Assembly (NCBI GenBank): GCA_003693705.1 | Contig: RBZT01000656.1 | Span: forward strand, 62,001 to 126,000 | Direction: 5' to 3' | DNA length: 64,000 bases | DNA from: Polymyxa betae A26-41 | Lineage: Eukaryota > Protista > Endomyxa: Phytomyxea | Part shown: positions 33,196 to 37,251 of the stretch, one piece after another | Layout of the letters: each line of letters opens with the position of its first letter | How positions within the stretch are numbered: position 1 is the first letter of the stretch | Position numbers and translations under genes: made by a program | The notes under the pieces: model-generated | Databases searched by the model: none | Told to the model about the DNA's origin: nothing | The model's input: the letters and a program-made list of their open reading frames with translations, nothing else

Positions 33196-34284
33196 CTACA
33201 ATTTATCAGTTTTCTGAGGGGCATCTTTTTTTAAGAATAAATCACCAACATGAACACAATCGTATTGTTGTCGTGCATAAGCATCCGCATCAATTTCATA
33301 CCCCTCAGAAAACAGTTCATTCAATCTTTCAGTTGTCCCATTAGATTTATCATAAACTGCATTCTGAGCGAAAGTAAACTTCATTATTGGCAATAAAGAA
33401 TCAGTTGTCAATACCTGATAAACGTCTTGAACGCGATTCACAGTTACGATCGATAAAGTGGGCTGACGAGGACAAGCGCTAAACAGATATTGATCGGACG
33501 GGAACAAGCCAATGTCTCTAAGAGCCCGGTTTCCAGCCACTTCAAACGTATTTGGATGCGATAGCTCAGATGGTGAAATTGCGGCAATTATCTCGAGCAA
33601 TTCAGGGAGCCATCCAGTATCAATATATGAAAACCAACCTGATCGACAGCCTGCCTTCTGTATACAGACCCGCTTAAATCCCAGCAATAGGACCAATCAT
33701 GTGAGCCTGGACGAATAATTCAATACTATGCGGCATTGTCGTAGCAGTTCAAGGGACCTAATATGGGTAGGTATTCGAAATGAGTGCCATGCTCGAACAA
33801 TGGCGGTATTTGACAGGAAGCCGATCGGGTATAACAATATGTGATTCCTGGGTGTAGCCGAATATGGTAGGCGAAGCAATTGGAACCCGGTCGTAAGACA
33901 CTAGCGATCAGATCCAGATCTAGCGGCCGATAGATAATGGCATCGTCAACCAAGAAGAATACAAAGTCGGAGGGTGTGGAGGCAAATACGTCGTCAAGAA
34001 TGGCCTGGAAGCACTTCAGCACAGAAAATTGTTAGGCGTGCGATTTTAACATGGAATTGAGCATCCGGGTTGTCGGATTCATAGCGGAAATGAACTTGGG
34101 GAAATCGCTGCTGAACACATTTATATGCATGCATGAAATGAGCATTGGAGGCAGCAACTATGACATTGACTTGTATAATATGATTATCATGAGATGGTTG
34201 GACATAATCAAACAAAGATTGAAGGCAGCTCTGCAATTGCAGAGGTCTATCTTTAGAGAGCACAACACACAAGAATTGCGCCAT
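33196..34284 (-). CDS. GT-A-fold glycosyltransferase-like protein
   Basis: VVLSKDRPLQLQSCLQSL start, FFLVDD (DxD-like), WSYCWDLSG, HPNTFE, VNRVQ; 3-4 short introns. Confidence 0.65.
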
Positions 34285-34387
34285 CAATATCGCTCTGCCT
34301 TCATCAGATCACCGATACTGGCGATACTGTACAACAAAAATTATTCTACAGTTTATCTGCATTTTTACAGATTAAAAAAAAATATTT

Positions 34388-37251
34388 TTACAGAGGTATT
34401 AGGAAGTCCCGAATTCCTCCGACGCCAATGGCTTCAGTCGTTTTTAGTGAAACTGGAACAATTTCTAAACCAGTCGACTTGAGCAATTCTTTTTGCTCCA
34501 AAGTCAATTGGTCCAGGGTTGTCCTCGACGAAAATAACATATTCGGGCCGGTTTTCGAGGAAATTTCAGCGAAGCTGAAGGAGACCCTATGTACAGCTTG
34601 TTCTATACTGATTTCGATTCTTCTAGCTGGTAAATGCTGTATGATCTGATTCAACGAACTCGAGCAGAGCAATTCAGGGCATAACATCGTGAACGCAGAG
34701 CAGACATAGAGAACTTGTGATAAATGGTAAGGCTCCTTTACATTTACATAGACAGGTTCCAATCCCAACTTTGCAAGCCATGAATATAATGTGCTGCCAC
34801 TAAATTTGGAATCAATGACGGCATAGGTATGATACAAAACCATATCAGTGGCCCCATCCAGATTCTGAATCGGACAGTTGATAATGCCCATTGAAAAGGC
34901 ATAAGACATTGTGAATTTGATTGAATCCAGCTGTAATTGCGACGCTGATTGGAACGTAGTTAGAGCAGAGTTGACGGGCATAACGAAGGAAGCAGGGCTT
35001 GTTGACTGAGCTGCAGCTCGCGACTTCAGAAAATTCTCTTCACAAGTAAGGATATGGACATGGGCAAGGTCGAAACATTGTAGCTGTAAATGCAACGTAG
35101 AGAACTCTTTTAGCACCAAGTTAACCAGACTCCGTCCTTTCATGGAAAGCAGACGGATTTCACAGCCACTTTGACGTTCAACTGGGATTCCATTACGGAG
35201 GATAAAAGCCACATCTTCCGGAATGAACAGCATTGCAGAAGGACGCTCTCCAAGTTCTGAAACATATCTAAGGCTATGAGAGAGCAAAGAGAGCAGAATT
35301 TACGAGGAAACGCGATAGGATCCTTGATTGAATAGGGAAGGCGGGAGGAGGAATCTTCCGGTTGGTTTTTCCGGCGTACAACCTAATTCGTTGTTGTTTT
35401 GAATAAAAAAAACAGTAATTTCATTATGCTCTACCTGGGAAGTGCAGTGCAGCGACCCTAAGGCTGATTTAGTCTAAAGTTAGAAGAAGAATGACATTCA
35501 TACCATACATACTAGAAACGCTGCCGTACTCAATAACATTGATACGTCCCTAGAAATACATTTCAGACACAAGAAGAATTTGCTGAAGAAAATCCAACTT
35601 TAAAATGTGAATTTCTGGCAACAAGGCGAGCAGATTCTTCATGCATCATGATCAGGTTCGAGTTGCCCAGATTCAAGCAGCTGTTTGTACAGAATTAGTT
35701 TGGTGCATGTGATAGTAACAAGCTTTTGGAATACTTTACTCCATATAACAGCTGGTACTGATCAGGAATACTAAGTTTACAATAAGCGATGCATAACCTA
35801 ACGCTATTTGTGACAAACCCTTGAATGTGGAATGATCTCATCCTGAGATATGTGGAAAATTCGACATCACTTCGAGTCATGACATATTGTTTGGTGATTG
35901 GGTTGCGAGTATATTCCGATACAAGGCGTCTCGTCAAAGATTTTGGGTTCTGAAAAATTCATGAGTACAACTTAAAACAATTGCAGAATTGACAGCAATT
36001 GCCCACCTCCAAAGATCCCATCAGAAGAACCAGATCATGCGAGATAATGTTAAACACGCAATCAAGATGCATCCTATCTTGACTTCGCTCGAAGAGATCT
36101 CGAACCTCAACAACGTAATCACAACCAATTAGATCAGCATCCATTAAGTGTTTGACAGCCAACGTGTTTGTTCTCAATCCGGTTCCAACGAAACATGTGT
36201 CACCAGCCATGAAGAAGTCGCCTCCTACATTGCTATTGGTAAGACGAAAAAATATCGGTTTTAAACAAACCTTCCAGTAATGCAGGAGATGCTATCCGAC
36301 CAATCAAAGGTGCCCCAAGATTTGTCATAACCTCTTCCATCAAATCAACCTCACCTAGGAGAATTTCATCTTGCGAGCCACATCAAATGAATCAGTAGTA
36401 CCATCGCGTGCTTTTGATGCCATGTTAGCCATTACGATACCTTTCTTTGTAGTAATCTGCTGATCTCTGGTGAAAATAAGATTTCCTAAAGGGCTCATTG
36501 AATGCTCGACAGCAATCTGAACCCAGCTAAGTTATTGACGATAACCGATTGAGAAGCTTTCATTACATACCATGGAGGTGTCGCGATGAGATCGATCCAG
36601 AGTAACACAAGGGCATGTCATAACAACTTGAACCAGTTGACTTGAATTCATCTGTTCTATGCATTGGCGTTTATATTCGTTGGAGAGATAGAAAGCCTCT
36701 TCTTGCGTTAACGACGACGCTTCACAGTTCGGTGAGAGCTTGTACTTTAACTGCTTCATAGCCAGATCCTATAACCAACCATTAAAGACCGCTAGGTAAT
36801 CCTAGATTTGTGCTCGCCTCCAGCCTTAGTCTTTTCTTCATATCGAAAGTCTTTCCTTTAGCACAGTCCTCTGACAATATCTTGCAAAATGTTAGCTGTT
36901 AGATACAGTTTGCATCTTGCAACATTACAGATTCCACATGGACGACCTTCACCCCAAAATCCTCCATCGCAGCAACGAAGAGCTAAGGTCAAGTGTCAAT
37001 TTCGCTCTCTGTGTTCCGATATCTACAAACTTGATGCTCGACGCGAGCTCGTTCCAAATCGAAAGGCTGTTCATACAAACGACCACAAGGATGCAGATTT
37101 CCAAAGAAATTCGCAGTCGAGCTGGGTTCTAAATTCAGATCCTGAGCCATCCCCCAGGCAAGGCATGACAAACGATGCGACCTTGAACAACACAGACGAG
37201 AGCCTCATCGTTCTCGTGAGCTTGATAGACATCACAGCCGATCCTCCTCAT
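34388..37251 (-). CDS. Arginine deiminase (eukaryotic type) with a fused C-terminal CtlX-like pentein domain
   Basis: GNLHP...LYE, GNLIFTRDQQITT, LEGGDF, GTGLRT, QDRMHLDCVF, catalytic SLHCTSQV (Cys codon 35444-35446). Introns 35434-35383 and 35303-35257 join it in frame to ORF 34388-35287. Confidence 0.85.

Follow-up and report, generated by a model that had tools for sequence, protein, structure and literature searches.

A predicted arginine deiminase of Polymyxa betae fused to a putatively CtlX-derived pentein domain without the catalytic cysteine

A 64,000-nt stretch of the Polymyxa betae A26-41 genome (contig RBZT01000656.1, positions 62,001-126,000, assembly GCA_003693705.1), here called the window and numbered from its first base, was found to carry on its minus strand, at 34388-37251, one gene for a 721-residue protein in which an arginine deiminase (ADI) domain is followed by a complete second domain. 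The first domain is predicted to be an active enzyme; the second appears to have the pentein fold and to descend from the CtlX family of putative citrullinases, with an aspartate where those proteins have their catalytic cysteine. The explanation that best accounts for the evidence as a whole, and one that we consider rather probable, is that the ADI carries a CtlX-derived pentein partner without a nucleophile, and that citrulline is handled by a separate CtlX-like enzyme. P. betae, a plasmodiophorid, lives as an intracellular biotroph inside the roots of sugar beet, and its draft genome (1,001 contigs, 27,085,946 bp, GC 45.1%, completeness of about 91% by CEGMA) was published without gene annotation (PMC6328671). 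The gene model described here is new, and no P. betae protein was among the matches of the protein searches made with this gene.

The exons were placed by tblastn with two orthologous proteins together with a frame-keeping search for splice sites. The resulting model has 15 exons and 14 introns, begins at the ATG at 37251, which is the first ATG downstream of an in-frame stop, and runs over 721 codons to a TAA stop at 34390-34388. Intron 13 (35383-35434; 52 nt, GT-AG, phase 0) lies between the cysteine motif that ends the ADI domain and exon 14 (35304-35382, residues 407-432), which encodes the linker, VVRRKNQPEDSSSRLPYSIKDPIAFP at 35382-35305. Intron 14 (35257-35303; 47 nt, GT-AG, phase 1) separates the linker from exon 15 (34391-35256, residues 433-721), which encodes the second domain of about 290 residues. 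Both introns match the other 12 in size and splice sites. Exon 15 sits inside a 303-codon open frame (35299-34391) in DNA of 41% GC, and it is taken to be coding rather than a chance frame because this long frame is accompanied by matches to the PF19420 and CtlX profiles. A preliminary description of the locus had placed these two introns exactly as found here (35434-35383 and 35303-35257), carrying the frame into exon 15, and the peptides that it quoted are all present: SLHCTSQ (its HCTSQ at 35449-35435), the linker, YHLSQ (34729-34715), RIEISIEQ and GGIRDF (34420-34403).

An exhaustive HMMER protein search with exon 15 as query recovered one strong relative, P0001 (747 residues, E-value 1e-52), which was matched over residues 456-747. 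A word-indexed protein search with the same exon returned zero matches, and a match of exon 15 to P0002 (886 residues, with Calx-beta repeats) was rejected as a spurious product of low complexity. P0001 is the Spongospora subterranea protein A0A0H5QLC4 (CRZ02793.1). The Spongospora data are a de novo Trinity transcriptome, HACM01 (PMC4471660), and by its accession series and date CRZ02793.1 would belong to that set. Pfam places the ADI domain of P0001 at residues 63-432 (145 bits on PF02274, profile positions 3-377) and PF19420 at its C-terminus. The P. betae model is collinear with this protein from end to end, with 63% identity overall, 79% in the ADI part versus 39% in the remainder, and a single one-residue gap that falls in the linker.

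A second orthologue, P0013, is the 780-residue 'Arginine deiminase' of Plasmodiophora brassicae, which is 60% identical to the P. betae model and was mapped exactly onto its genomic locus (GCA_036867785.1). There, HCTSQ and the linker VVRRR...SIKPCSPLP share one exon, with no counterpart of intron 13; since one exon holds both, the reading from ADI into linker is a plain genomic fact in this sister genus. The last intron of P. brassicae is in phase 1, at the position homologous to intron 14 of P. betae, and the linker core RL.Y..K is kept in all three plasmodiophorids. Two-domain proteins of this kind are also encoded by Trinity open reading frames of Echinamoeba exundans (P0020) and Diphylleia rotans (P0025), both flagged as complete. 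The fusion put forward in the preliminary description is therefore backed by both the transcript-derived Spongospora orthologue and the P. brassicae exon structure, and a single P. betae gene for a 721-residue, two-domain protein is regarded as confirmed by these comparisons of sequence. The P. betae exons were searched one by one; the joined 721-residue sequence entered only the frame check, the alignment to P0001 and P0013, and one tree, to which it gave the ADI row.

The ADI domain is encoded by exons 1-13 (35435-37251, residues 1-406), whose frames match PF02274 at 40.8 and 35.0 bits against a Pfam cut-off of 22.8. Its motifs are FTRD (36463-36474, residues 176-179), LEGGD (residues 226-230), HLD (36061-36069, residues 280-282) and, at the end of exon 13, HCTSQ (35435-35449, residues 402-406). 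In the structures of ADIs, the first of these holds a guanidinium-binding aspartate, HLD provides the catalytic histidine and a second guanidinium-binding aspartate, and the cysteine of the last, Cys403 here, is the catalytic one. When 13 fused ADIs are aligned, the columns of FTRD, LEGGD, HLD and HC do not vary. Because every catalytic ADI motif is present, the N-terminal domain is predicted to be an active enzyme that converts L-arginine to L-citrulline and ammonia, in line with the active enzyme assumed in the preliminary description. No hydrophobic leader was seen at the N-terminus on inspection of the sequence.

An AlphaFold2 (AF2) model of the second domain, built from a 23-row alignment, had a predicted local distance difference test score (pLDDT) of 88.8 and a predicted TM-score (pTM) of 0.87. 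Its best PDB matches in Foldseek were the N-terminal domain of ArgZ/AgrE, DDAH, RESC5 and amidinotransferases. VIA gave a Z score of 21.6 to ArgZ (249 aligned residues, root-mean-square deviation 3.4) and of 20.4 to DDAH, and every one of its top structural matches was a pentein. The modelled structure thus supports a pentein fold, that of the guanidino-modifying enzymes. A search of the PDB with exon 15 by sequence found no match, and a protein atlas search returned the superfamily assignment again and nothing further.

At family level, exon 15 matches PF19420 (DDAH_eukar) with an E-value of 5.1e-10 and 39.5 bits (cut-off 23) over profile positions 103-284 of 291. Its only NCBIfam match is the CtlX model (NF046062; E-value 1.9e-7), where its 30.5 bits fall short of the equivalog cut-off of 334. 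The less diverged ADI-fused domains score 275 (P0044), 234 and 173 bits on this model over its full length, and a free-standing relative, P0004, reaches 356 bits, above the cut-off. These profile scores support a descent of the second domain from the CtlX/PF19420 lineage of putative citrullinases; the term 'CtlX-like' holds as to descent because the match of the CtlX model to other ADI-fused domains extends along all of it.

CtlX is defined by FPNN and HTN, in which asparagine replaces the two guanidinium-binding aspartates, together with the pentein cysteine (PMC9007349). The P. betae domain fails on all three features and yet keeps the fold. In the alignment its FPNN position reads SFVMP.., so that the signature is gone; YHLSQ (34715-34729), at the YHTNV site of CtlX, keeps the histidine but has lost the asparagine of HTN; and Asp716 (codon at 34406-34408), in GGIRDF (34420-34403), is aligned with the catalytic cysteine of GGGxxRCM. 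The same aspartate is found in Spongospora and in P. brassicae, where the histidine has been lost too and the protein has a 26-residue C-terminal tail. By these aligned residues the second domain is shown to be incapable of cysteine-based covalent catalysis. The pentein fold, the CtlX ancestry and the replacement of the nucleophile by aspartate had all been anticipated in the preliminary description; its CtlX-like remnant has indeed lost the cysteine, but the degeneration goes further than was described there, since FPNN and HTN are also gone and P. brassicae has even lost the histidine. Three-way identity among the plasmodiophorids is 23% in the second domain versus 68% in the ADI domain, and the best-conserved islands of the former are its first strand, its first long helix and a C-terminal G..RD...PL block. 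Between P. betae and P. brassicae, where amino-acid identity is about 33%, the synonymous sites are saturated, and the ratio of nonsynonymous to synonymous substitution rates (dN/dS) would be uninformative.

The preliminary description had proposed a search for the same architecture across protists. It proved to be widespread in eukaryotes and was seen in Spongospora, Plasmodiophora, Echinamoeba and Diphylleia and in approximately nine environmental eukaryotic proteins. The 14 ADI-fused second domains compared (the P. betae gene, P0001, P0013, P0014, P0016, P0020, P0025, P0027, P0031, P0034, P0044, P0049, P0057 and P0080) have all lost the cysteine, which is replaced by Asp in four, Ser in two and Gly in eight. 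It is kept in 15 of 16 PF19420 relatives that are not fused to ADI, a set that includes other fusions (P0003-P0012 and P0082-P0087). Several of the fused domains have an ADI-like F.RD or F.AD at the FPNN site. A branch with support 84/88 sets the 14 fused rows apart in the second-domain tree, and in the ADI-domain tree the fused proteins cluster (SH-aLRT 94); a set supported at 99 in the latter tree comprises the fused ADIs and fornicate ADIs with tails of 100-260 residues. Many eukaryotic ADIs are without a second domain. The simplest reading of these trees and residues would be one old fusion in which the nucleophile soon disappeared, with the whole domain dropped later on in many lineages.

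Some members of these sets deserve separate mention. For the 930-residue P0020 of Echinamoeba exundans, the precomputed Pfam annotation lists ankyrin-repeat families and there is a 521-residue tail; its second pentein domain lies at about 561-930, and the ankyrin repeats are probably located between the two halves. P0012, a free-standing protein of 305 residues, is the sole non-fused relative without the cysteine (SGASVASL); its FPNN has become FPSS and HTN is gone, which would make it an independent catalytic loss within the PF19420 family. P0082-P0087 are eukaryotic or environmental proteins of 430-730 residues with a cysteine-bearing, apparently active PF19420 domain at the C-terminus. Their N-terminal regions carry no family assignment, and the Thecamonas protein P0087 additionally has PF01931.

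The tails of fornicate ADIs (P0069-P0076, P0050 and P0033, including the 580-residue Giardia type) open with a strand of the form LYIP.F followed by a helix and a second strand, G..VY, and the fused CtlX-like domains begin with the same strand-helix-strand pattern. The tail of the Aduncisulcus ADI ends in GGGLRCF. When aligned by hhalign with the fused-domain alignment, the Aduncisulcus tail (own row excluded) gave a probability of 37% and the fornicate tails one of 11%. It may be speculated that the fusion is an ancient innovation of eukaryotes, that the pseudo-citrullinase became an allosteric sensor of arginine, citrulline or ornithine, or an obligatory folding partner of ADI, and that the C-terminal domain of Giardia and other fornicate ADIs is a truncated vestige of it. 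Hints in this direction are the set supported at 99, the shared start of the tails and the F.RD or F.AD of several fused domains; we regard this larger proposal as doubtful, and since the hhalign probabilities are low the vestige idea stays a lead.

Genome-wide searches covered the draft assembly (1,001 contigs, 27,085,814 bases) and turned up, on a separate contig, one further PF19420 gene with several exons (G000:C413:80597-81816, minus strand). It has the cysteine, in an intact GGGGVRCM, and its CtlX signatures are intact (VFPNNWFSTH, FLEGTG, IYHTNV and GGGGVRCMIAEIF); by these residues its product is a candidate for an active citrullinase acting downstream of the ADI. The profiles of carbamate kinase (TIGR00746), argininosuccinate synthase (PF00764) and arginase (PF00491) found no match in the draft genome. 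As regards the classical ADI pathway (ADI, ornithine transcarbamylase or OTC, and carbamate kinase), loci resembling transcarbamylases were found on C900, C846 and C739; split by exons, their matches fall below the OTC cut-off. Arginine synthesis is compromised in P. brassicae (Schwelm et al., PMC4471660). Given an intact CtlX-like gene and the lack of hits for arginase, argininosuccinate synthase and carbamate kinase, the ADI and the CtlX-like enzyme could be a route from arginine to ornithine.

Taken together, these results make a structural or regulatory role beside the ADI, without catalysis of its own, the most likely one for the second domain. The fusion may have arisen once, early in eukaryotes, and the partner would have lost catalysis early and then been kept as a non-catalytic module. 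This module would most likely pack against the ADI and, as an integral pseudo-partner, stabilise or regulate the enzyme. The full-length fold was modelled on the Spongospora orthologue, and its pTM of 0.78, reached despite a disordered linker (residues 438-457), suggests a defined arrangement of the two domains. In less diverged lineages the module may still bind an arginine-family ligand, and ligand sensing is possible there, several of these domains having F.RD or F.AD; for the plasmodiophorids ligand sensing finds no support, the pocket motifs being unrecognisable in the alignment. The citrulline/arginine sensor or oligomerisation module that the preliminary description suggested would be a plausible role. 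The citrulline itself would pass to the intact CtlX-like enzyme encoded on the other contig, and a route from arginine to ornithine would result.

Four other explanations have to be weighed against a non-catalytic partner. If the second domain were still an enzyme in which Asp or Ser served as the nucleophile or the general base, the result would be a bifunctional ADI-citrullinase taking arginine to ornithine. Asp does occupy the cysteine position in all three plasmodiophorids, within the best-conserved block G..RD...PL; two fused domains from among the least diverged carry Ser instead and retain NN, HTN or HTD, and LEGxGS; and the fusion of consecutive pathway steps is a common pattern. However, Gly, found at this position in eight of the 14 fused domains, the absence of FPNN and HTN from the plasmodiophorids and of the histidine from P. 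brassicae, and the separate intact CtlX-like gene in the same genome all argue in the opposite direction. All characterised penteins, moreover, work through a cysteine thiouronium-type intermediate, and an enzymatic second domain appears improbable. The domain might instead be a functionless relic, tolerated since it is folded and harmless, as its fast evolution (39% against 79% for the ADI domain between P. betae and Spongospora, 23% against 68% in the three-way comparison) and the degeneration of all its catalytic signatures would suggest; many eukaryotic ADIs also manage without it. A relic is nevertheless unlikely, given the persistence of some 290 open codons across three genera and in further supergroups, a fold predicted with high confidence, the conserved islands at the first strand, first long helix and C-terminal motif, and the pTM of the full-length model.

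That the two halves are expressed apart in P. betae, with the ADI ending through retention of intron 13 or 14 and exon 15 serving as a gene of its own from Met439, is very improbable. Retained intron 13 would lead to a stop after 45 codons and retained intron 14 to one at 35143, and there is an in-frame ATG seven codons inside exon 15; but the linker exon is conserved as protein in three genera, the Spongospora transcript encodes the fusion, P. brassicae has no intron between the cysteine motif and the linker and shares the position and phase of its last intron with P. betae, and neither intron 13 nor intron 14 differs from the other 12 in size or splice sites. The preliminary description had also pointed to host manipulation by arginine depletion. 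In Giardia, release of ADI and depletion of host arginine are reportedly documented, and P. betae likewise lives inside host cells (PMC6328671), so that a secreted effector draining host arginine, with the dead domain for host targeting, might be imagined. This part of the earlier account finds no backing here: signs of secretion are absent, the N-terminus having no hydrophobic leader, and the genomic setting is in keeping with a housekeeping conversion of arginine to ornithine. The same architecture is present in the free-living Echinamoeba and Diphylleia and therefore has not arisen for parasitism. An effector role is considered quite improbable.

Several points nevertheless weigh against the explanation preferred here, a CtlX-derived pentein partner without catalysis alongside a separate CtlX-like enzyme. 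Single origin of the fusion has only moderate support (84/88), with a small sample of non-fused relatives, and pTM is the one measure that speaks for the packing of the modelled domains. The lower identity of the second domain among the plasmodiophorids (23% versus 68%) would also be expected of a slowly decaying relic, and Ser or Asp at the cysteine position could in principle act in catalysis. With the draft genome about 91% complete by CEGMA, the absences of carbamate kinase (arcC), argininosuccinate synthase and arginase are provisional.

All introns of the gene are 46-57 nt long, with GT-AG borders in 13 of the 14 and GC-AG in one. Exons 1-5 lie at 37251-37182, 37128-37031, 36982-36929, 36880-36818 and 36768-36571, exons 6-10 at 36516-36402, 36354-36271, 36224-36007, 35949-35819 and 35770-35735, and exons 11-13 at 35680-35599, 35549-35504 and 35457-35435. 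Intron 4 (36769-36817, 49 nt) is the only GC-AG intron of the gene, and it is required for exact collinearity with the Spongospora stretch RLEDLAMKQLKY. A GT-AG alternative for this intron was rejected, as it would delete 23 conserved residues, and so was read-through, which runs into a stop. The next downstream gene, at 33196-34287 on the same strand, begins about 100 nt past the stop codon of the ADI gene.

A literature search, with most subscription journals outside its scope, found no paper on an ADI with a second pentein domain, and a keyword search of the eukaryote-wide ADI survey (Novak et al. 2016, PMC5052871) gave no passage on such a fusion. The orthologues are public as 'arginine deiminase' with both Pfam domains precomputed, and the sequence facts thus appear to be public but uninterpreted. 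ADI is a drug and vaccine target in Giardia as well as a therapeutic enzyme, and pseudoenzyme domains are increasingly seen as regulators. In the protein described here an enzyme predicted to be active is joined for good to an inactive copy of the family that is proposed for the next step, and this architecture persists in three or more eukaryotic supergroups. Should the dead domain indeed regulate or stabilise the ADI, it would offer a clear instance of a regulatory module drawn from a neighbour in the pathway, and it might explain the C-terminal domains without known function on some protist ADIs. The ADI and CtlX-like genes also suggest a supply of ornithine, and hence of polyamines or proline, in arginine-dependent plasmodiophorid biotrophs without detectable arginase.

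Compared with known systems, the N-terminal 406 residues agree with the eukaryotic ADIs (PF02274; the Giardia ADI; the ADI clade of Novak et al. 2016) in having all motifs and in clustering with them, and the protein differs from these in its complete second pentein domain of about 290 residues. CtlX (NF046062; Price et al. 2022, PMC9007349) shares the fold and is the best and only family match of the second domain, which differs in its score (30.5 versus 334 bits), in the lack of FPNN, HTN and the cysteine, and in being fused to an ADI instead of free-standing. The Spongospora protein A0A0H5QLC4 and the 780-residue protein of P. brassicae are orthologues with the same architecture, linker and Cys-to-Asp change, although their database entries are named only 'arginine deiminase'. 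RESC5 of Trypanosoma brucei presumably serves as a non-catalytic subunit. It is a DDAH-fold pentein of the RNA-editing RESC complex (PDB 8dpk, 8fn4), a setting outside metabolism, and a structural match at Z scores of 16-17; unlike the P. betae domain it stands alone as a subunit, has no active pentein joined to it and belongs to another subfamily. The arginine dihydrolase ArgZ/AgrE (PDB 6juy, 6lrf), whose N-terminal domain is the best structural match (Z score 21.6), is likewise a multidomain protein of arginine-to-ornithine metabolism, but its pentein domain is active (Cys264) and performs both hydrolytic steps itself, and the domain to which it is joined is not a pentein.

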